From: Magallana gigas
Taxonomy: Eukaryota
Direction of reading: 5' to 3'
NCBI RefSeq assembly: GCF_963853765.1
Contig: NC_088858.1
Location: forward strand, 50,530,001-50,594,000
DNA: 64,000 nucleotides
Below are positions 48,851 through 63,151 of the stretch, piece by piece; position 1 is the stretch's first letter, and every line of letters begins with the position of its first letter. The translations under genes and the position numbers were made by a program. The notes beneath the pieces were generated by a model. The model saw only the letters and a list, made by a program, of their open reading frames with translations. It searched no databases and was not told the origin of the DNA.

Positions 48851-49646
48851 ATTTTGTCTTAGTGTTCTTCACTTATCAAATTATACTATTCTAGAATATA
48901 TCCATTTATTCAAACTAGCATTAATAAACTAAAATAATCACAAATGTAAATTTGAATAAAACTATCTGTTAAAAATACTGAATTTTATTAAAATAAGTAC
49001 TAGGTTTGTTTTACTAAATAAGTAAATATATAATCCCAGATATTGTTAGTTCATCGTTCATCAAATGTGTCCCTGTGAAACCTTAAGAGTGTAATACCTA
49101 TCTTTTTATGTTTTATTGACTAAATCAAAGTCGTATTTTATGCATGAATTTTCAATAAAATTTTAATTGATTTATACACCTACAATAACTTTACATATGA
49201 TTCATTTATATTATATATATATATATATTGTAACAAATGGCCAAAGATGAAAGTATTAATTGATAAAAAAGGCAAAACCAACTTATTTAAATTATCTCCG
49301 TAGAAATGATTGGAAGGTAATATTACATTCTGTTAATTTAGTAATGCAATGTCTGCTCATGCGCTGGTATAGTAAATGACCCCCCCCCCCAAAAAAAAAA
49401 CCCCCAAAAACCACCAGAAAACACCACGATCACAATTATTTAGAGGTCTCTTGCCTTTTGTTCAATACATCATTTTCGCAGGGTTTTTTTTTGGACGAAA
49501 AGAAACCTTGAAAAACTATATCACAGTTTTTGTATTAGATTGTTCTGATAAAATCGACAGACAGCACGTGTGATGAATCTCGATACTATATATATAAATA
49601 GACAAATAAAAGAAAGTCGTTTATGAAGTTTTTTCCCTTGCATGCT

Positions 49647-49652
49647 TTTATT
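49647..49652 (-). terminator. Polyadenylation signal of Gly/Tyr gene 1
   Basis: AATAAA in ACAAAATAAA context, conserved in all four family members. Confidence 0.6.
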
Positions 49653-49726
49653 TTGTGTGTTAATAATGAAAACAGCGTTTTGAGGTACAATATAGTTTTC
49701 TTGAATGTCAAAAATGACTGGAGCCA

Positions 49727-49738
49727 TTAATAGTAGTT
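49727..49738 (-). CDS. Terminal coding piece (NYY*) of Gly/Tyr gene 1
   Basis: Acceptor T-run-gcAG (49739-49740), then AAC TAC TAT TAA. Confidence 0.75.
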   Translation of the reverse strand, partial: NYY

Positions 49739-50384
49739 CTGCAAAAAAAAAATTGTTGAAAAATACATTCATTAGGTATATAAACATATGATGCAAGATG
49801 TCATTTTTTAATTTTTTTGCTTGGAAATGATACTATGTCGACATTAATAAAAGAGTAACACAAGCAATGAAATAATTTTAAAGACATTAACGGGTAAAAA
49901 TACATGAATATATCTATACAGAGTAAACATTTGACCAAAAAGATCCCTAAAAATTATCCATTGTAGAACTGATTTGTAAAACAATCGAATCAATAAAAAA
50001 AACTTCGTTATCTCAACAAAGAAATATATTCTTATCACATGGAAAAAAAATTGATTACAAAAACAGTATTTATGCACAATATTGTTTTGATCTGAAACTA
50101 CATACAGTTAACCCATTTTAGTAGAAGAAGCTTAAATATCTTTTTGTAATAAAATTTAAAAAAGAGTTCTTATGTTTGTGATATTTAAAAAACCCATATT
50201 TTTCAGAACTATTTTCATTTTAAGCTTTGAATTAGACACACACATAAAAAAAACCCACGTATTCATAAAGCGGCGTAGGCCTCAACACATTGATTTTGAA
50301 TATATTAAACAAAAAGAAATGTTAATGAAATATCCTTTAGTATCCGTTATTTTTAGAATTATTTTTTAAGTATAATCAATTTAC

Positions 50385-50729
50385 CTTGCCTAGCCTGCTA
50401 TAGCCAAGGCCTCTTCCGTATAGTCCATTTCCGTACAGTCCGTTTCCATACAGGCCGTTTCCGTACATTCCTCCGTATAGACCATTTCCGTACAATCCCC
50501 CATACAGACCGTTTCCATAAAGACCACCATACAGACCGTTTCCATAGAGTCCACCATAGAGACTGTTGCCATAGAGACCGTTTCCATACAATCCATTTCC
50601 ATATAAACCGTTTCCATAGAGACTGTTACCGTAGTAGGGGTTGTAAAGTCCCTGACCGTAGCCGATGCCTCCGTAGTAGAAGCCAAAGGCCACAGAAAAA
50701 AGGGCCAGACAGCAGAGCAATCGGAACAT
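50385..50729 (-). CDS. Secreted Gly/Tyr/Asn-rich GNGLY-repeat protein, copy 1 (shematrin/prisilkin-like), main exon; 118 aa spliced
   Basis: Signal peptide MFRLLCCLALFSVAFG; AG directly before ATG; donor AAG|GTAAAT; non-coding exon 1 ends at 50824 (GTAGGC). Confidence 0.9.
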
Positions 50730-50887
50730 CTAAAGCAGGAGAATTGATGTTATTATTTCTGGGTATTGAGAAAATTATAGAATAAGCCAATGATAAAGTT
50801 TAGGATGAATCAATGTGGCCTACCTTGTTGATAATTAAAAAGGTCTTCGTTAAGATCCTGTGTGCTCAAAGGTTGTATGTGCAGGGG

Positions 50888-50895
50888 TATATATA
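50888..50895 (-). promoter_or_regulatory. TATA box of Gly/Tyr gene 1
   Basis: TATATATA 64 nt upstream of the exon-1 donor. Confidence 0.6.
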
Positions 50896-51885
50896 CTAAG
50901 AATCACATAAAAGTCAACCAAACATCATCAATAAAAACAATCGTAATTAACCACAATGTGACACAACTCCACCGAGGACATTTGTTTTCAACAAACATTC
51001 AACATTGATAAAGATGATTCATCATAGGAGGTCACATTTAAAAGACAATTTCATAATCATAAAAATGAAAAATATGGCAGGGTCATCAAGATAACGACGC
51101 AAATTTAAAGTTCATCCAGGTAAATGTTTATTCTACATATTGTGGTCCTCGTTTGTCACTAATTGCAAAATATGATTAAATGTACTATTTGTTCGTATCA
51201 TTTTCATTTAAATTTCCTGTTTTAGTACGATTTATTTAGAAGGAAATGATTGCTTACAAAACCATTTTTTAAAAATGTATAATTTGAAAAAAAAAATGTT
51301 TAAACCTTGCAGATAAAGCAAAAAGTTAAAACACCCCCTACCACCCCCCCCCCCCCCCCAAAGAAAATCCACCAATGTTAGGCTATTTTTTGATAAACAA
51401 TTCGTGGCATAAACATATAAAGATTTTTTTTCCTGGTGCATTACTCAGATTTGGTGATAGCACCTTTACGTAAACACTTTATCATTATTTTAAATTGGGG
51501 AATATTACACAAGCATAAACTTTAAAATCTAAAGTGTAAATAATAAAATTCGAGTATATATGTAATAAAAGTAATGTCAAAGCAAGAGGTGATAATAATG
51601 GTTTGTTATGTACGCTTTCTCAAAAAAGCCACACTTCGATTAATTGTGCTTTAGCGACAAACGATTGATTCTATAATATATTCGCAACAATCGTTTTCCC
51701 CTATCATTTTTAACGCCTCTTCAAATTTCATTTAATCCCTTGTAAAAATTTCAATAGATATATAAGAGGCGCTTTTATTTAGATGTTTAATAAAATCTTA
51801 AACGAAAATAAGTGAAATATATTATTCTTAAGATAAAATAAAAAAGTGAGACACAATGAACACAAGGAACAAAAAAAAATGAAGC

Positions 51886-51921
<36 letters not shown>

Positions 51922-52404
51922 GGCTGGAGCCTCTCCACCATTCCTGAAAATTTGAAAGCCTTTCTTTAAAACATTTTGAGAAAAACTGTGAACAAGCAAA
52001 AACATAAATCTTTATAATCTCGGGACTGGAAGTGACGACCAAAAAATTAAGTGTAAATTTTTTTTTTTACAAATTTTGTCCAGGATTAGATCTGAAAGCT
52101 TCATCGAAATTGGCGAAACCATTATTGAGAAAACGTTTAAAAAATGATCAAAGCTAGACGCGATCTCATTGTTATCAGCAAAAGTTCTTCCGCTTGAGTG
52201 CATTTGCTATTGGGAAAGTTGTTCTTCTCTATTATAATTTCTTAATTTTTCTTCAAATTCTATTTAACCCTTTCTAAGGATTTCAAATGACAATATTTAC
52301 ATTGAGAAAAGGCACTATTATATAGATTTTTGATAAAATTATAAACGGACATCAGTAAAATCCATAAGTTAAAAGACCAAGAAGCGAAACAATTAAAGAA
52401 CAAA

Positions 52405-52475
52405 AAAAATTCGGCTCTTGGAGAATGAACCCGGGTCGACTGAGCACAAGTCCACCACTCTCATGAATACGCCAT
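52405..52475 (-). mobile_element. Degenerate tRNA-derived SINE head
   Basis: Minus strand GTGGTGGACTTGTGCTCAGTCGACCCGGGTTCATTCTCC followed by a T-run; B-box-like, no complete cloverleaf. Confidence 0.35.
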
Positions 52476-53264
52476 GGAATCTGTCACTTCAGGGTTTTGG
52501 ATTCAAATTCTTCAGAATACATGGGTCGATTTTAGAACAAATTACATATTTTGAATTCATAAAAGGGTCGCTATTGAACAACTATTTAATTTTCAAAAGT
52601 TGATTTTTAATAATTGATAATTGATAGAAATGAAACAGAAATGAAAATATCTTACATTGTAAACTTAGAAATAATGCTAGACATCTTATTTCCCACGTAA
52701 AAAGTCAATTTATTCAGATGTACAGCTATGTCAAAATGTGGTCATTATGTAGAAGACACTAAACATTATTTTTGAAGTGTCCATATTATAATTAATTTTA
52801 AATCAACACCAATATTATTTAATTAATATACAAGTATACATGTATACTTGTATATAAATTAAATAATAATGGTGTTGATTTCGATCTTGAAACTCTCTTA
52901 TTTAAGGGGAAAAGTCAATATTCATATAAATTAAACTCTGATTTGTTTTTCTATTGTCCATGGATTTATTAAATATGCGAAGAGATTTTAGTACTGTATA
53001 TATATTTGACTTAAGTAATGCATGTAGATTCATTAATGTTTGGGTTTTATTCTTAATTCTATCAAGGCTAGGGCAATCAAATTATCTTTAGTATATTTTT
53101 TAAAATTCTTTTTTGCTTTTATTTACTTCTTAAGATGTTCATAACGTCTCATTGTATTTAAGCATAAGCCACATATATATGTATTGTGAAATCATTAAAT
53201 TTACTGTGACTCAATTTTCGTGGATTGCATATATTTTTCAGGTTCGTTGGGACGAAATTTCGTG

Positions 53265-53745
53265 AAAAAATGACAATAACAAACCGTGAACCATCTCAAA
53301 ATCCATAAAACGAAATACAAATTTAAATCAGAGCAACACGGACCTCCAAATAGATAGAGGTAGGATCAGGTGCCAAGGAGGAGTGAACATCCTCTGCTGA
53401 CCGGTCACATCCGTGTGCTCTTTGTCGTAATCGAAAAAAAATCGGAAAAGTCCGTAGACAATTAGGTGATTAATTGTGTTCTAACAATTAGTATGAAAAA
53501 CGTCAGTCAGCATGCGGCCCAGTGGAAGATTGTATTTGCTGACATGGTCGTTGTATCGACCATAGAACTTACGAAAAGATGACTTCAAGGGAGACTGTTG
53601 ATTGTCCTGTTTTATCAACTTGTTTGTCAGTAGCTTGCTTCGTCTTAGAAACTGTTCATGTACGAAGAGCATGCCATTGCGTATCGAATCACCTGAGAGA
53701 CTAAAACACCATATGCAGGTGATGGAGGTATATTGCTACATAAGT
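53265..53745 (-). mobile_element. 3' remnant of a retroelement (Penelope-like RT C-terminus + 3' UTR)
   Basis: Peptide EQFLRRSKLLTNKLIKQ..LKSSFRKFYGRYNDHVSKYNLPLGRMLTDVFHTNC*; homologous to 62134-62400. Confidence 0.6.
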
Positions 53746-54724
53746 AAGGAAAGTTGACTATAGAAAAATTGAAGTCATTGCGTTTATCATAAAGTTTTGT
53801 ATTTAGGTTACCATTTTTACCAGGTTTTTTATGACCACGTTTATGTCCATGTCCAGTAAAATATCCAAATATAAAACAGATGACGCAGACTTTTTTATTT
53901 CAAGTTCACTGAGATATATCGAGTCGACGTAAGTATGGAAATAACAATTGTTAATTGATAATACGTCGTCGACTCGATATACCTGAATGTTAAGTTGAAG
54001 GCCACAGCGAGTGATTTATTTGTTCACGTAAAGTTTGCTTCATAAGAATACAAAAATAGATCTGCTAACGATGGGGGCACAATTGGTACCCATGGGAATT
54101 CCAACAGATTGTTGGAAGACTTGATTTCCCAAAACTACATAGATATTGTCTATCAGAAACTCAAGCATCTTTTTATTGTCAACTTCAGAGTACTTGTGTG
54201 TGCAATCAGAATGTTTTTTAACAAAATAATTCTTGAGATTTCCAATGACAAGGTAATTAAATCTTACATTTTAGATCCCGACAACGATTTAAATAAATCT
54301 AAGAAAACAACAAAGCAGCAAGGTAACAACATGAAAAGTTTTTGATTCAGCTCATACTAACAAAGCTGTACATGTCAAACTTGTACGATCATGGTGTTTT
54401 CTTTCATTCCAGCAACCGTCTATTAGGCCAATTCAAAACAATATGTTCCATTTATACCGCAATAAAAACCTTACGTTATGCATTATCATCGTCTTCTAAA
54501 TAGTTAAGCTCTCAATGAAGTCTATAATACCAATAAGATTTTGGTAGTTAAACATTTTCTATCACGCTAAGCTTTCTGTTCTCTAAGAATTGCTGAAAAC
54601 ACGAAAAGATAAACATTTCTTATATTTAATAAATAACAAGCTATATTGAACGCATTTTTAAATATAAACACAAAAAAATTAATAAAAAAGAAATAAAAAA
54701 TAACAATCATACGGTGTAAAGTCA

Positions 54725-54730
54725 TTTATT
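54725..54730 (-). terminator. Polyadenylation signal of Gly/Tyr gene 2
   Basis: ACACAAAATAAA context. Confidence 0.6.
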
Positions 54731-54816
54731 TTGTGTCATTAAATACATTTTTATGAGTTATGTACACGGTCATGTTTGGCAAAAACAAATCCAAGACGTC
54801 CTTGTCGAACATTCCT

Positions 54817-54828
54817 CTAGTAATAGCT
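54817..54828 (-). CDS. Terminal coding piece (SYY*) of Gly/Tyr gene 2
   Basis: Acceptor ttttgattttcttttcAG, then AGC TAT TAC TAG. Confidence 0.8.
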   Translation of the reverse strand, partial: SYY

Positions 54829-54895
54829 CTGAAAAGAAAATCAAAACATATAACATAAAGAAAAACTATAAAAACAATTCTTCATGATTAACCTA

Positions 54896-55092
54896 TTGTA
54901 AACGTACTACATTTGGCTGTATATTCTATTTAGCGCTTTTGGCGGAATGCAACTTCCGCTAAATCAAGTACATCGCTAAATGCCATGCATGTATGTATAA
55001 GAACAAGAAAACGCTAATTCAAATACACGCCAACTTGTTCAAAAACTAATTACCGCAAAATAACGTACACGCAAAATATAATACGTTTACAG
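54896..55092. mobile_element. 197-bp TA-target MITE in intron 2 of gene 2
   Basis: TIR (C/T)TGTAAACGTA; TA TSD at 54894-54895 and 55093-55094; empty site AACC-TA-TTCGAAC in gene 3. Confidence 0.85.
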
Positions 55093-55119
55093 TATTCGAA
55101 CTTGCAATATTCAATTTAC

Positions 55120-55461
55120 CTTTCCAAGACGGCCAAGACCACTTCGATATCCATTTAGGCCTCCATACACATTGTTTCCATACAAGCCATTGTACAGACC
55201 GTTTCCGTAGAGTCCGCCATAGAGGCCGTTTCTGTAGATACCGTTTCCATATAGACCACCATACAGACCGTTTCCATAAAGCCCACCATAGAGACCGTTT
55301 CCATACAACCCATTACCATACAACCCGTTTCCATACAGTCCATTTCCATAGAGACTGTTACCGTAGTAGGGGTTGTAAAGTCCCTGACCGTAGCCGATGC
55401 CTCCGTAGTAAAAGCCAAAGGCCACAGAGAAAAGGGCAAGGCAACAGAGCAATCGGAACAT
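55120..55461 (-). CDS. Secreted GNGLY-repeat protein, copy 2, main exon; 117 aa spliced
   Basis: Same architecture as copy 1; exon 1 ends at 55593 (GTAAAG). Confidence 0.9.
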
Positions 55462-55647
55462 CTAAATCGAAAAACAATAAAAGAATAAAAAGTAGCTAAT
55501 AACTAACAACCATTTAAGTACATTGTTTTGAAAACAAACTACTTTCAAACGTATTTTTTTTTATTGGAGTACAATAACTTGTAAAACTTTACCTTTTGTC
55601 GGTCCTTGGTGGTTATCCAATATTGTTTGAAGCTCAGCCCGTTGAGA

Positions 55648-55655
55648 CTTATATA
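55648..55655 (-). promoter_or_regulatory. TATA box of Gly/Tyr gene 2
   Basis: TATATAAG 55 nt upstream of the exon-1 donor. Confidence 0.65.
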
Positions 55656-57361
55656 CTCACTAGCAGGTTAAACGTCATCGTAATCTGCGTTACGAAAGTG
55701 ATTGATATTAACCACAAGTTGCCATCACTCCGCCACAAGAACTTGTTAAACAATCGTCCAAACTACACTATTTATCAAAAAAGATTTTTAAATCAAACAT
55801 TTATTGCACTCACTCAAATGACAAGAAGGGTACCAACGTCCTACGCAGAAAAGGTAGAAATAGGTCAGTTGTGAAAGCGATTAAAAGCCCTCGGTTAAAG
55901 TCGCCTCATTTAAAAAAGATGATAAGTATCATTTTTATGCATTTTTTCATAATTCATTTCTATTCGACTTCTTGGTACATCCACTGTTTTGTTTATCCTA
56001 AATGTTGCTCTTTGATCATTTAAATTCAATATAAATGTGTCTATAAATGTTTATGATGGTTGCACAATGCTTGATTTATCTTGTTATATTTAGATATGTT
56101 AAAAACTAACATCAAAATGAATCTCAAGTGATTGGTTTCCGATAGTGGCTGAGTGATGATAAAGAAAGAAAAATATAAAGATTTGAAAGAAAAACAATCC
56201 ATAAAGTTATACTTGGTCCAAAATCTTTTTCAGGCAATATCAGGTTAAAAATTATAATGTTCAGATAAACGGTGTTATCTAACATTAAAGCAATCTCATT
56301 CATAAAATATATGTAATAAATTTTTCTTAAGTGGAGTAAAAATCCCCAGCGACAATATCTCCTTTGTGTACTCCAGCATATTTTAAAGGTATGTTTTCCT
56401 GGTTTAGAAAAGTCACAAATGTCTTTCCGATTCACCACTGACGTGAATGATAAATTAGTTTTGGGGGCACATTGACCAACACGTTGTTAATAATCTTACA
56501 TTAAAGAGTAATTTTTTTGTAACACATTTATTATTTAGACCAACATATGGAATATCTTTAGCCGAGGTTATTGCACGAGAGTTCAGTTACTTTGGATTAC
56601 AACTTTTCATTAATTACACAAAATAAACTGTATTTATGTTTCGTCAAAAAAGTATTTTGTTGAATTAATAAATGCGTTTTTAACCAGAATTGTATTTTTA
56701 ATTTTTTTCGAAAATCATTTCCAAAATGGATTTATGTATGAAATAAATGAATTATACAAATATCGTTTTGAAACTATAGAAAATAAAATATAACCTAGAA
56801 ATATCTTCTATACTTTTAGTGCACCTTTTCCGATATATTTTGCTATATTTGAACAACATCATATTTCTGAGAGGAAAATAAACACGCGAGAAGTGATCGA
56901 TAGATAAAATTGGGAAAATGGGGAAATTGTGCTGTAATCACATTGACTTTCAGGAAAAAGCTGACAGTTTTATCGAAAAAGAAAAGTAAATATACAGAAG
57001 TTTGCCTAATTTGGTATGTATTTCGATTTGAAGATAAGCGCTTTATTTTCTGTTTTAATTTTGTATTTAAAAGTCTTGTAGGCTTGGTATCTTCAGACGC
57101 TTACATTTAGACTCAAGTATCATTTAGTTTAAGGATCTTGCTCTCAATATTAACCTGTAATGGTTATGTATTGTAAATTCATAAGTAATTCTGATAACAT
57201 TCCACATGATGAAAACACAAATAAGATCCTTTTATTTTGTTTTTTCTTATAAGTTTTAATAAAGACTATTGACCACCATTAATATATGGCATCACAAATT
57301 TCATTACACTATACGATAAGGAAATTGTCCATATAGAAAAGCAGCTGCACAAAATCCTTAT

Positions 57362-58051
57362 TTAGTAGTTATCCTGTAAAACATAAAAAGTAAAATTTCT
57401 TGATGTTGTTGTTGAAACTAGATCATGTATACATCTTGATTAATGAAGTATTTTCACAATATTTCTACTTTGCCGTTGATAAATCCTCCAAGTCCTTTTC
57501 CACCTGAGATAAAAGTAACTGTTCCACCGTACCCTTTACCAAAACTGTTACCATATCCACCATTCAATCCACCGTATCCTCTATACAGATCAATCTATCC
57601 GGCCCAAAGCCACATTGTCTACCATATTCCAATCCGTATCCACCATTACTACCTCGGTATCCTCCATATCCCAATTGGTATCCACTATCACTACCACCGT
57701 ATCCACAATTACTACCTCCGAATCCACCATATCCACCAAATAACCCACTGTATCAACCTTTATATCTTCCGAGATAACAAAAGTATCCACTTTTGCTACC
57801 AGAAAGATCGCCTCCATTTATACCTTTTCCTCCCAGAAGCCCGACAATTCTGACAATTCCCTTTCCACCAAATCCCCCTCCATACCCCCAAAAAGGATGC
57901 CGTATCCACCTTTGCCTCCAAAGACATTTTTACCATAGAGACCGTCTTCATAGATATTGTTTCCTCCAAAAAATCCAACACCAACAACTCTTTTTCTTAA
58001 TAATGCATGAATCAAGAAGTATTTAAGAAAAATTACAAATTTTGAATTCAT
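57362..58051 (-). pseudogene. Decayed Gly/Tyr-rich (shematrin-like) gene
   Basis: GGY/GGKG-rich reading across two frameshifts (~57885, ~57600) and premature stops (~57750, ~57595); ends NGK|gtag, 95-bp intron, terminal GAT AAC TAC TAA (DNY*); ACAAAATAAA at 57231-57240. Confidence 0.75.
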
Positions 58052-58750
58052 TAAAGCGTCACTATTGATCAATTATTAAATTTTCAATACTTGATTTTAA
58101 CACGAAGTAGTGCATATTTATTCGACATAATAACCATAATAATCTTGGTGAAAATGTAAAAAAAAAAACTCTCCTTCATTTTTAATCCTTAGAACAAAGC
58201 TTAAATGCATGGACGTTACAACTTCATGTAAATATTTAAATATTGGTTACAGAAAAGACAATATCTTACCTTGTAAACTTAGAATACATTCATTTAAATT
58301 AAACTGTGATTTTTCCCCATTGTTTATGAATTTATTTAATCAACAGAGAAATTTTAGTACTGTGCATATATTTGACTGTTTAAGCTTTGCATATAGTTTC
58401 ATTTATTTTTGGGTTTTATTCTTCATTCTATCAAGGCTGGGACAATGAAATAATCTATTGTATATATTTCGTTTCTTTTTTTTTCTTTTTTTTTTACTAT
58501 AATTTACTTCATAAGATGTCAAAATGTATTTAAGTCATATATTTAAATATTTTCAATTTACTGATAATACTCAAAATACTATCAATTTAATGTGTATAAC
58601 TAGATCAAAATATTATAATGTAGATACTCATATATTATAATTATAGCTATACAATAAACAAATAATATACTTATCAAATTATTAAAATACATGATTATAG
58701 TTACACATGTATACTATTGAATATACTTATAAAATAAATCATAAATGTAC

Positions 58751-59124
58751 CTTTTTTTTTTATTACCAATCAATACAATAGTTCTATATAGAAAGACAAA
58801 CACACCAAGATGACTGAACAAAAACTTTCACTCTCACATTCATTCTAAATGTACAGTTACCACGGTTACTAAAGGGTTATATGATGCATGTCATAGTTAC
58901 GTGTTGATATAGATATATGTGTAATGCCCATTATAGCAAGTAAGTATATGGAGATGATTAAAAATAGTCAAACATGAATGTTTGCAATAAGATTCTCAAT
59001 AGTTTTCCACCTAGTAATAAATTCATCACATCTCATTTTTATTGCAAACAACTTTCTCTCTACCAAATACATGTAATATGCAAATAAATGTAACTTGACT
59101 CATTATACCAGAATAGGATATACC
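58751..59124 (-). mobile_element. Possible 3' remnant of an older L1/Tx1-type LINE, antisense to the younger insertion
   Basis: Poly(A) on the minus strand at ~58751-58765; frame YYMYLVERKLFAIKMRCDEFITRWKTIENLI resembles Tx1 ORF2 C-termini. Confidence 0.4.
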
Positions 59125-59134
59125 AAGATTATGT

Positions 59135-61296
59135 GCATCAGTTATAGAATAAAATCCACCTTAGACCTACTTATTTCAAATACACAAACAGGTTTCATAC
59201 AGGGCAGATATATTGGAGAAAACACTAGATTTATATATGATCTAATGTCTTACACAGAAATTAATAATTTGCCTGGTTTACTTATGCTTATTGATTTTGA
59301 AAAGGCTTTTGACTCGGTATCATGGTCTTTTCTTTATAAGGTGCTGCACTTTTTTGGATTTGGAAACAATATTATAAAATGGGTAAAAATTTTAAATACA
59401 AATTTTAAAGCTTCAATCCTTCAAAGCGGCTTTCTATCGCAGCAGTTTGAAATACAGAGAGGTTGTCGTCAGGGTGATCCCGTAGCCCCATATCTTTTTA
59501 TTCTCTGTGCAGAAATCTTAGCTATACTTATAAAACAAAATAAGGATATAAGAGGTATTTTTGTCTATGATAGGGAACACAAAATTTCCCAATATACTGA
59601 TGATACGTCACTTATCCTTGATGGTTCAGCTTCATCCTTGTTTAATGCTCTTGAAACTTTAGAATTATTCTCAAAAATTTCTGGTCTGCAAGTTAATAGC
59701 TCAAAAACTAAAATTGTATGGTTTGGATCAAAAAAATTCTCTTCTGAAGTTTTCCATCATTCTAGATGGAAACTAGATTGGGGGGCCACTGAATTTGTAC
59801 TATTAGGTATTCATTTTTCAGTGGACTTAGAAAAAATTCCAGATTTAAATTATGACATTCAAATTCCCAAAATTATTGCTTTGATTCAACAATGGGAAAG
59901 AAGAATTCTAACTCCCATTGGAAGAATTACAGTACTTAAGAGTCTTATTGTACCTAAATTAAACCATTTACTCATTTCCCTACCGAATCCTAAGAAAGAT
60001 ACAATTACATTTTTGAATAATGAGTTTTTTAGATTTGTTTGGAAATCCAAGTGTGACAAAGTCAAACGTTCAATTGTGACCCAAAACTTTTGCATTGGAG
60101 GTTTGAAAATGTTAAATTTTAAAAATTTTATAATTTCGCTTAAATGTTCTTGGATCAAAAGAGTGGTGCAAGGGGGACAATCATGGATGAGCATTTTTAA
60201 AGCTATCTTTGGTGACATAGGGGTTGGTTTTTTAGAGTTTGGTGATAATTTTATTAAAAAACTTATAGAACAATGCAATAATATATTTTGGAGAGATGTC
60301 TTTGATGCTTGGCTTAATGTTATGAACGTACACTCTAACCAAATTTGTGATTCTAACAATAATATAATATTTTCTCCAATATGGCATAACTCAAACATCA
60401 AAGTAGAGAAGAAGTCTATGTTTTATAAAGAATGGTACAAAAAAGGTGTAAAAATTGTTAAAGACTTTTTACATGATGATGGGTCATTTTTATCAAAATC
60501 TGAAATTGAAAAAAGATTTCATTTGAACAAAGTATGTTTTATGCAATATAACAGCATAATTAGTGCTGTTCGAAAGTTTGTTAAAGACTCAAATTTTTCA
60601 AAGGAGAACTATGTCAATTTTGTTGGTCCTTTTCTACCCTTTTACTGTGTTGAATTACTTTTGTACAAGAAATGCACTAAACCTATTTATAATTTAATCA
60701 ATACAAATGTCCAATGTATTATTCCAAACTCAATCATTCGATGGAATTCAAAAATTGTCATGAGAGGCTACTCCGAACTAATTTTACAGGATATTTTCAA
60801 AGTATGTTTCAAAGTTACAACAGATACTACTGTACAGTGGCTACAATATAGAACTCTACATAGAATTCTTCCTGTAAAATCGTATCTAAAAAAGATAAAA
60901 ATAGTTGATAATGATATATGTTCTTTTTGTAATAATGAAGTTGAAACTATTGAACATGTATTCACATCCTGTTCCTTTGCTTTAGATTTATGGAGTAGTT
61001 TAAGTATGCATATATATCATGCTGTTTCAAAAAGAGTTGGCTTTAATGAGTATAACATATTATTTGGAGAGACTCCTCCTTCTAATTCTAACTTAGTCAT
61101 CAACTTTTTGATCCTGTATACTAAACAATATATTTTTCAATGTCTGTACAACAAAAAAGTTCCAATATTTGCAGGTCTACTATGTCACTTAAACTTTAGA
61201 TATGAAATAGAAAAATGTGTTGCTATAAGAAACTCTTCTTATGATAAACATAATGATAGATGGTTTGAATGGAAAAATCTTTTTCTTAATATTTAA
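59135..61296 (+). CDS. Truncated L1/Tx1 ORF2: reverse transcriptase + zinc-binding domain (no endonuclease)
   Basis: QTGFIQGRYIGEN, IDFEKAFDSVSW, RGCRQGDP, QYTDD, GGLKM, CSFC..ETIEHVF..C; the first ~13 codons of ORF 59095..61296 are flank-derived. Confidence 0.9.
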
Positions 61297-61460
61297 CTTC
61301 AAGAGCTTTATTCATTTCAGTTTATGCAAAATTGTATCAACTTGAATAGTTTTCAAAAATTATGAGATCATGACTTGTATGTATGTGTGTATGAATGTGT
61401 TATATGTACAGTGTATTATAAAATGAAAAACTGCAAATAAAAAAAAAAAAAAAAAAAAAA
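59135..61460 (+). mobile_element. 5'-truncated L1/Tx1-clade LINE with poly(A) tail and 10-bp TSD AAGATTATGT
   Basis: TSD at 59125-59134 and 61461-61470; AATAAA running into an A-tail of about 24 nt. Confidence 0.9.
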
Positions 61461-62133
61461 AAGATTATGTCTATTGTCCTATCATAACGTATAACATAAT
61501 AACAAAATAACCTTTTTTTTAATGTGGGAAATAAATCATATCAGTTGTGATCTGTATGCATTCAGCGATGGGAATCTCCTTGGCTGGCGAGGCCGAAGTT
61601 GATGTTTATTCTTCAAACAAGTTTACCTGTTATATTTTCAAAGCAATATTGTTGCTTTCATGCTATGTGAGTAAGTACAAGCAATAAATAAAACTTGTAC
61701 TTCAGTTTATCTCTATCTTCAATTTCTAATAACGATTGAAATAATACTAAGAAAACAACAAGGCAGCAACGTAACAAAATGAAAAGTTTCTGATTCAGCT
61801 CATACCCACAAAGCTGTACATGTCAAACTTGTGCGAACATGGGGTTTTCTTTCATTCAAGCAACCATCCATTAGGATGGTTTCAATTCGAATTCAATACA
61901 ATATGTTCCATCTAAACCGAAATAGACACCTTCCGTAATGCATTATCGTCGTCTTCTAAATAGTATTAGCTCTCAATGAAGTATAAAATACCGTTTAGTT
62001 TATGAACATTTAACATATTCTATCATGCGGAGCATTCTGTTGTGTATAAATTGGTGAAACATTTCTGTTATTTACTAAATAATAAGCTACAATTAAAGCC
62101 TTTATACATATAAACAGAAAGAACTGAATAAAT

Positions 62134-62400
62134 CTTCCAAAGGGTCGCATGCTGACTGGCGATTTTCATACTAATTGTTAGATCATAATTAATCACCTAA
62201 TTGTCTACGGACTTTCCGTTTTTTTTCTCGATTACGACAAAGTGCACACGGCGGGTGTGACCGGTCAGCAGAGGATGCTTACTCCTCCTAGGCACCTGAT
62301 CCCGTCTCTATCCTTTTAGAGGTTCGTATTGCTCTGATTTGAATTTGTATTTCGTTTTATGGATTTTTCAGATTTTTGACAGTTTGTTATTGTCATTTTT
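62134..62400 (+). mobile_element. 3' remnant of the same Penelope-like family as 53265-53745
   Basis: Shares GGTGTGACCGGTCAGCAGAGGATG..ACTCCTCC..GGCACCTGATCC and the tail; absent at the paralogous site (~54690). Confidence 0.65.
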
Positions 62401-62436
62401 CATAAATAGAAATAACAATCATACGGTGTAAAGTCA

Positions 62437-62442
62437 TTTATT
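62437..62442 (-). terminator. Polyadenylation signal of Gly/Tyr gene 3
   Basis: ACACAAAATAAA context. Confidence 0.6.
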
Positions 62443-62528
62443 TTGTGTCATTAAATACATTTTTATGAGTTATGTACACGGTCATGTTTGGTAAAAACAA
62501 ATTCAAGACGTCCTTGTCGAACATTCCT

Positions 62529-62540
62529 CTAATAATAGCT
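62529..62540 (-). CDS. Terminal coding piece (SYY*) of Gly/Tyr gene 3
   Basis: Acceptor ttttgattttcttttcAG, then AGC TAT TAT TAG (synonymous change relative to gene 2). Confidence 0.8.
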   Translation of the reverse strand, partial: SYY

Positions 62541-62630
62541 CTGAAAAGAAAATCAAAACATATAACATAAAAAAACTATAAAAACAATTTGTCATGATTA
62601 ACCTATTCGAACTTGCAATATTCAATTTAC

Positions 62631-62972
62631 CTTTCCAAGACGGCCAAGACCACTTCGATATCCATTTAGGCCTCCATACACATTGTTTCCATACAAGCCA
62701 TTGTACAGATCGTTCCCGTAGAGCCCGCCATAGAGACCGTTTCCGTAGATACCGTTTCCATATAGACCACCATAGAGACCGTTTCCATAAAGCCCACCAT
62801 AGAGACCGTTTCCATACAACCCATTACCATACAACCCGTTTCCATACAGTCCATTTCCATAGAGACTGTTACCGTAGTAGGGGTTGTTAAGTCCCAGACC
62901 GTAGCCGATGCCTCCGTAGTAAAAGCCAAAGGCCACAGAGAAAAGGGCAAGGCAACAGAGCAATCGGAACAT
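62631..62972 (-). CDS. Secreted GNGLY-repeat protein, copy 3, main exon; 117 aa spliced
   Basis: Four aa differences from copy 2; exon 1 ends at 63097; intron 2 is 90 bp. Confidence 0.9.
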
Positions 62973-63151
62973 CTAAATCGAAAAACAATAAAAGAATAAA
63001 AAGTAATAAAAAGTCTGGGACCAACCATAATTACATTATTTTGAAAGTAAACTACTTTCAAACTTATTTTAAGTACAATAACTTTTAAAACTTTACCTTT
63101 TGTCGGTCTTGGGTGGTTATCCAATATTGTTTGAAGCTCAGCCTGTTGAGA

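Follow-up and report, generated by a model that had tools for sequence, protein, structure and literature searches.

A three-residue, tyrosine-ending tail encoded by the terminal exon in a family of Gly/Tyr-rich secreted protein genes of Magallana gigas

Structure and splicing of the three A-type genes

We analyzed a 64,000-nucleotide (nt) stretch of the Magallana gigas genome (contig NC_088858.1, positions 50,530,001 to 50,594,000; hereafter the window, from whose first letter the positions below are counted). On its minus strand lie three genes for short, repetitive Gly/Tyr-rich proteins with a signal peptide (genes 1, 2 and 3, with ATG at 50729, 55461 and 62972), which we assign to a subfamily A, and a fourth locus that holds a pseudogene of a subfamily C. 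Read from the sequence, each A-type gene consists of three exons: a 5' untranslated region (5'UTR) exon, a single coding exon, and a terminal exon that opens with three codons and a stop of the form x-Tyr-Tyr-stop (xYY*). These are ordinary three-exon members of a tandemly expanded family. The splicing of the terminal exon and its conservation are almost certainly real, and for genes 1 and 2 the splicing of the last intron is proven.

Upstream of the short 5'UTR exon of each A-type gene is a TATA box. Intron 1 (94–131 nt) abuts the start codon (..ttag|ATG), and the coding exon of 114–115 codons starts with MFRLLCCLALFSVAFG, continues through GNGLYG/GGLYG repeats and ends in ..RLGK. The bases directly 3' of the RLGK codons are GTAAATTGA, and a reader of open reading frames (ORFs) therefore sees a protein ending in GKVN*. 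According to the original prediction, these apparent ends are splice donors, each paired with a downstream acceptor and a four-codon tail; its coordinates, donors, acceptors, tails and intron lengths (646, 291 and 90 nt in genes 1, 2 and 3 and 95 nt at the fourth locus) all hold on the minus strand. The AAG|GTAAAT donors after ..RLGK are at 50385, 55120 and 62631. In gene 1 the acceptor ttttgcag is followed by AAC TAC TAT TAA (NYY*, 49738–49727), and the acceptor ttttcag is followed by AGC TAT TAC TAG in gene 2 (SYY*, 54828–54817) and by AGC TAT TAT TAG in gene 3 (SYY*, 62540–62529). A scan of the window on both strands for YAG-NNN-TAY-TAY-stop gives 4 occurrences versus 0.52 expected, three of them the A-type tails. 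The decamer ACAAAATAAA, which has the context of a poly(A) signal, lies 70–121 nt 3' of each stop and has 7 matches in the window versus 1.42 expected. The A-type terminal exon as a whole is no micro-exon, being about 100–120 nt long with only a tiny coding part.

RNA contigs from three studies, X9 (on record as RNA) and X2 and X13 (taken as RNA), were placed on 49640–55639. Contigs of all three contain the joint 49738|50385, which skips 646 nt, and the joint 54828|55120, which skips 291 nt. Both have GT..AG ends on the gene strand, both skip at AAG|GTAAAT, and their sides are 47–113 letters long. The introns proposed at 49739–50384 and 54829–55119 are thus removed exactly at their borders, and GKVN* is a donor read through rather than a protein end. 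Depth is zero in X9, X2 and X13 at 49840–50239, within the 646-nt intron, and this silent stretch serves as a control that the contigs represent RNA. X9 additionally holds the 5'UTR joint of gene 1 (50729|50824). The RNA proof covers genes 1 and 2, the junction of gene 3 not being distinguishable from that of gene 2 in the RNA contigs. Three other joints, 49759|54677, 53402|53521 and 53689|54961, were rejected as spurious: their sides are 20–26 letters long, their ends are non-canonical and they fall in A-rich or repeat sequence.

Gene 1 starts with a 5'UTR-only exon at 50824..50866 (5' end approximate; the X9 joint has 33 letters on the exon-1 side), with its TATA box, gtatatatac, at 50896–50887. 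The coding exon (50385..50729, 115 codons, covered by RNA contigs) carries the signal peptide MFRLLCCLALFSVAFG and GNGLYG-type repeats and ends ..GYSRLGK|GTAAAT; the phase-0 last intron (49739..50384) separates it from the terminal exon (49640..49738, 3' end at or beyond 49640), which holds the tail and a 3'UTR with ACAAAATAAA at 49656–49647. In gene 2, exon 1 (55593..55630, 5' end approximate) lies downstream of a TATA box, tatataag, near 55655–55648, and is followed by intron 1 (55462–55592); an X2 contig continues past 55463 for only 10 letters, which read as GACCGACAAA in reverse complement and correspond to the end of exon 1. The coding exon of gene 2 (55120..55461, 114 codons, end ..GLGRLGK|GTAAAT) and its terminal exon (54716..54828, ACAAAATAAA at 54734–54725) are both seen in RNA and flank the last intron (54829..55119). 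The coding exon of gene 3 (62631..62972) is 97.7% identical to that of gene 2 and has the same end. From the sequence, the 5'UTR exon of gene 3 ends at 63097, intron 1 is 62973–63096, the last intron is 62541..62630, and the terminal exon is 62425..62540 (3' end approximate), with ACAAAATAAA at 62446–62437.

The last intron of gene 2 aligns to that of gene 3 (90 nt) except for an insertion of 199 bp at 54898–55096, which accounts for the lengths of 291 and 90 nt. The inserted element has inverted ends (TGTAAACGTA..TACGTTTACA) with AATA on its flanks and is absent from the otherwise identical intron of gene 3; it looks like a miniature inverted-repeat transposable element. RNA contigs and raw reads stack on it at 95–99% likeness with loose ends at both borders, indicating that the element family is transcribed elsewhere.

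The splice itself is not new, as it is present in a public gene model. Over 113 residues the Magallana model A0A8W8HP16 (P0017) matches gene 3 at 98% identity, and its last residues, ..GLGRLGKSYY, imply the junction of gene 3. The terminal exon had been called hidden, and this is correct for ORF-style reading only, because a transcript-guided public model already ends ..RLGKSYY. ORF-style reading yields false ends (GKVN, GKVKRA, GKVIHV...), including those of the metagenome-type ORF calls P0001, P0004, P0007, P0010 and P0049. A 2012 model, K1R414 (P0005), has the gene-2 junction, but in the wrong frame (..VLERAITRG..).

All three UniProt models of the cluster are faulty, being chimeric or out of frame. 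In K1R414 the end of gene 2, the tail exon and the 3'UTR are read out of frame and then fused to the opening part of an A-type coding exon, and both K1Q081 (P0016) and A0A8W8HP16 are fusions of neighbouring genes. K1R414 was not found in any paper text searched, and literature searches on oyster Gly/Tyr-rich mantle proteins returned nothing specific to the genes of the window.

A family with a common exon layout

The spliced A-type products are 117–118 amino acids long. Inspection of the translation shows a hydrophobic core in the signal peptide MFRLLCCLALFSVAFG|FYY.., with small residues at positions -3 and -1. The predicted mature proteins have about 101 residues, of which Gly makes up 35–36%, Tyr 22–23.5% (22–24 residues), Leu 16% and Asn 13–15%. 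They contain no Cys and hardly any acidic residues, have isoelectric points of 8.7–9.2, and carry one Lys and two or three Arg, all close to the C-terminus. These low-complexity proteins are most likely disordered. Pfam contains no family for the A, B or C proteins; a Ribosomal_S6e hit on one 385-residue B paralogue was dismissed as repeat noise, as no stretch passes alone. When 1.84 billion representatives were searched with a profile, most hits were bacterial-type SLYG/GLW repeat proteins, which we regard as compositional matches, and the only kin among the hits were P0008, P0017, P0004, P0010, P0026 and P0049.

We searched the assembly to which the window belongs in six frames, inspected the loci, and found the same exon in other genes. 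A three-codon tail ending in Tyr was found at 15 loci in three subfamilies within about 160 kb of contig C6. The common layout is a coding exon ending in G-K or G-E, a phase-0 intron, and three codons of which the last is Tyr, followed by a stop; the tails across the 15 loci are NYY, SYY, GYY, TTY and DNY. The end of the coding exon is conserved as [R/K]-x-G-K, with G-E in seven B copies, and the predicted mature N-termini are Tyr-rich in all three subfamilies (FYYGG in A, YGYK in B and DGYYG in C). Subfamily A consists of the three window genes, with exon end ..RLGK and tails NYY, SYY and SYY.

Subfamily B, with signal MIRLIFFVVLFSVAFC, includes one copy with exon end ..GHSRLGK and tail GYY, and seven copies with exon end ..GHSRLGE and the same tail. 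These eight are the ordinary B genes that are intact, and about 910 nt downstream of their coding exon stands ..ttttt[g/a]cag|GGT TAC TAT TAA. The seven near-identical copies (L006–L011 and L013) form a 5.28-kb tandem array outside the window, at G000:C6:50690834-50722688; in all of them the exon-end Lys has changed to Glu (..RLGE|GTAAAA), and the GYY tail exon is retained. The 385-residue paralogue ends its coding exon in ..SKIGK, with tttgcag|ACT ACC TAT TGA (TTY) about 960 nt downstream. A further B copy (L017/L035) was not counted as intact: its reading frame contains a stop and no downstream xYY exon was seen, so we class it as a pseudogene.

Subfamily C has signal MNKLICLSVVLVVAAA and GGYGG repeats. 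Its members are L037 (..FRNGK|gtaaga..ttttacag|GAT AAC TAC TAA, tail DNY), L038 (exon end ..LRGGK, tail GYY) and the fourth locus of the window (57340..58010, minus strand), which is 81% identical to the intact L037. At this fourth locus the exon end is broken. A donor-like AAA|GTAGAA at 57469/57468 is followed by a 95-nt intron, the acceptor ttttacag and GAT AAC TAC TAA (DNY*, 57373–57362). Relative to L037 it is 5'-truncated, missing about 31 first codons and with them the signal peptide, and its frame spans three reading frames and contains an in-frame stop. It is therefore a true pseudogene, as had been proposed.

Two contigs from another taxon, L027 and L028, contain ..YGK|gtgat.. and, across an intron some 150 nt long, ..tcatttcag|AG[T/C] TAC TAC TAG (SYY); the N-terminal part of their protein is absent from the window's genome, which was searched. 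A further contig, L039 (Logan SRR27362810), which encodes protein P0049, carries the promoter, the 5'UTR exon with its intron and the signal peptide of gene 1, together with ..HSKLGK|GTAAAT and the start of the last intron, in which it breaks off after 72 nt, before any tail. Unlike gene 1, its middle is rich in Tyr, Asp, Glu and Lys and is not Gly-rich; a search of the window's genome did not find this gene. As P0049 illustrates, the family appears, from sequence comparison, to consist of conserved ends around a replaceable low-complexity middle. The layout is present in three subfamilies whose repeats no longer align, which indicates that it is old and a marker of common descent. Fast-evolving, low-complexity proteins of the shell-matrix type cannot be traced between genera by sequence, and the exon layout together with the tail offers a checkable marker of their descent.

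Gene 1 has a promoter block (50871–51000; ..tgtgtcacattgtggttaattacgattgtttttattgatgat..TATA) and a 3'UTR that are closer to subfamily B than to genes 2 and 3, the promoter comparison being with the upstream regions of L005, L009 and L004. With this B-like promoter and 3'UTR, yet A-type repeats, gene 1 has the appearance of an intermediate or an A/B recombinant.

In the stretch 53240–54240, between genes 1 and 2, the summed depth of contigs is very high, reaching about 3,400 in X2, with many variant letters and loose ends. The sole ORF of at least 70 residues touching it encodes 78 residues from a TTG start (54109–54345), and the stretch has the look of a repeat, or a remnant of a transposon, that is transcribed. 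Intergenic G/C homopolymer runs (G17–G24 on the minus strand) occur at 49385–49400, 51345–51365 and 51890–51915; 51877–51925 was skipped as a repeat in read placement. The window holds 138 N letters.

Conservation of the tail and its possible role

The tail is kept while its surroundings vary. Between genes 1 and 2, the intron ends are 56–60% identical and the 3'UTRs 52% identical, and unrelated pieces are 51 ± 3% identical, so these flanks are at the level of random sequence; the two tails are both x-Y-Y and differ by two synonymous Tyr changes. Among the tabulated tails the last codon is TAT or TAC in 13 of 13, leaving the final Tyr invariant, and the fourth codon is in every case a stop, be it TAA, TAG or TGA. 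The last intron is fixed in position and phase, although its length varies between 90 and about 960 nt. The original prediction of a separately encoded Tyr tail under selection stands insofar as the tail is encoded by the last exon and the pattern is consistent with purifying selection acting on, at a minimum, the last Tyr, the tail length and the stop position. The case for selection from these alignments is suggestive rather than statistical, because only about 6–7 independent lineages contribute to it.

The explanation that we consider somewhat better than even overall is that these genes form a three-exon family of secreted Gly/Tyr-rich proteins whose Tyr tail has been kept, and whose end may act as a motif in an extracellular matrix. 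The tail and the basic residues before it would form a C-terminal basic-aromatic end motif, R-x-G-K-x-Y-Y-COOH, that contributes to matrix assembly, most likely through oxidative cross-linking of chain ends via Tyr or 3,4-dihydroxyphenylalanine (DOPA), or through docking onto the matrix. Both chain ends would then bear Tyr, the mature N-termini being Tyr-rich as well. That the tail actually serves assembly or cross-linking is possible but still doubtful. If the terminal Tyr is needed for cross-linking, it would tell how such matrices polymerize, and otherwise the tail is part of an ordinary conserved gene structure; in either case its three residues provide a short motif for assembly assays.

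Several observations weigh against a special role of the tail, in addition to the small number of lineages. Position 1 is free (N, S, G, T or D), and position 2, although Tyr in most tails, is Asn in the C-type DNY and Thr in the 385-residue gene. The mature protein already contains 22–24 Tyr, and two more add little cross-linking capacity; in a chain that is already one-fifth Tyr, any importance of the tail would have to come from its place in the chain or from its free carboxyl end. The B- and C-type splices are predicted from homology only. Finally, about 1% of a poly(A) raw-read run (X21) was read and gave zero reads over the A-type genes, from which it follows that expression is not ubiquitous, and nothing more.

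The alternative readings are partly compatible with one another. The intron and the three codons may simply have been kept by descent and by ordinary constraints, namely the acceptor, the stop and a Tyr-rich composition, with no tail-specific function. We give this a substantial but minority share of the probability. It draws on the same freedom at positions 1 and 2, on a Tyr content of 22–23% along the whole protein, on the persistence of the tail even in a pseudogene, and on the fact that the promoter, the signal peptide and parts of the 3'UTR are conserved too, so that the tail is not unique. A neutral 9-nt stretch would, however, be expected to drift as its flanks have done, whereas the last Tyr is invariant despite synonymous TAT/TAC changes, and the stop varies in identity but is fixed in position even though introns, 3'UTRs and repeats are unalignable across the subfamilies. 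The same constancy of the last Tyr and of the three-codon length is left unexplained if the selected item is the intron, which as a 3'-terminal intron could aid expression, export or 3'-end processing of a highly expressed secretory mRNA, with the codons incidental. Introns do flank the coding exon on both sides in all subfamilies, with the 5'UTR intron at or near the ATG, and the last intron is constant in position while free in length (90 to about 960 nt) and tolerant of a transposon insertion; even so, we judge this account unlikely.

It is less likely still, and in our estimation quite improbable, that the tail is a propeptide released by a cut behind the lone Lys of [R/K]-x-G-K, with the Lys then removed and the Gly amidated to leave a mature product lacking xYY. 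G-K does stand at the exon end in subfamilies A and C, in the 385-residue paralogue and in the other-taxon copies, and the basic P4 residue in most of them (RLGK, RNGK, RGGK, KIGK, RYGK) fits the monobasic rule. On the other hand, the seven tandem B copies with G-E retain the tail, R is at P5 rather than P4 in one other-taxon copy, and the exon-end AAG is also favoured by the donor consensus. A discarded tripeptide would not explain a conserved last Tyr, and amidation is a feature of peptides rather than of 10-kDa structural proteins.

Comparison with known matrix proteins

Mussel byssal preCols and nematode cuticle collagens are repetitive chains whose end Tyr residues form oxidative end-to-end cross-links. 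They differ from the oyster proteins in that their core is Tyr-poor and their ends are specific cross-link sites, whereas the oyster core is 22% Tyr.

The oyster family also resembles the shematrins of Pinctada (Yano et al. 2006; descriptions in PMC3896809, PMC4759782 and PMC9210306). Shematrins, like the oyster family, are secreted, basic, Gly/Tyr-rich, repetitive low-complexity proteins from tandem clusters (PMC4759782 for the tandem arrangement), and both have basic residues and a terminal Tyr at the C-terminus, RnKmY in shematrins and R-x-G-K-x-Y-Y here. By inspection, the A-type proteins have a signal peptide, and the Gly-rich XGnX/GnY repeats and basic character of shematrins are found as well (GNGLY/GGLY in A and GGYGG in C). 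What differs is the repeat of subfamily A, which is of GNGLY type, and the tail motif. The signature of shematrins and of the lysine-rich matrix proteins (KRMPs) of Pinctada is RKKKY, RRKKY or RRRKY (PMC3896809). The oyster ends are ..RLGK-NYY, ..RLGK-SYY, ..RLG[K/E]-GYY, ..KIGK-TTY and ..RNGK-DNY, which do not match RnKmY and have in common with it only the terminal Tyr and nearby basic residues. No named shematrin was among the matches of our homology searches, whose sensitivity is limited by low complexity, and the C. gigas genome is described as having no shematrin homologues (PMC4759782). The comparison with shematrins made in the original prediction is therefore retained as an analogy and not as homology.

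KRMPs share with the oyster family a Gly/Tyr-rich domain and have a C-terminal signature of RnKmY type, but their defining feature is an N-terminal domain rich in Lys and Trp (PMC3896809). With a single Lys, the A-type proteins have no Lys-rich N-terminal domain and do not belong to this group. The end motif of the oyster proteins may be a functional analogue of the RnKmY ends in pearl-oyster shematrins and KRMPs.

The 'shematrin-like' mantle proteins with G(n)Y repeats of Dreissena (PMC9210306) and Mytilus (PMC3896809) resemble the oyster family in having basic, Gly-rich tandem repeats that cannot be aligned to Pinctada shematrins, although composition and presumed role are the same, and subfamily C, with its GGYGG repeats, is the oyster group closest to them in look. 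Mantle expression was shown for those proteins, whereas the oyster family is known here from genes and RNA contigs. We found no report of a shared tail or gene structure for 'shematrin-like' bivalve proteins in the literature searched. A deep homology would tie the oyster genes to the Pinctada shematrin and KRMP genes and to the bivalve 'shematrin-like' genes through the three-exon layout, the markers being an intron in the 5'UTR, a phase-0 intron behind an exon that combines signal peptide, repeats and [R/K]-x-G-K, and a last exon coding for a few residues up to a terminal Tyr. Under such a scenario, which we hold to be improbable, the C-terminal Tyr would be an ancient, required site of tyrosinase or peroxidase polymerization in shell or periostracum. 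While the oyster family lacks the shematrin signature and a detectable sequence relationship to shematrins, it is of shematrin type in its composition, its charge, its clustering and its basic tail ending in Tyr.

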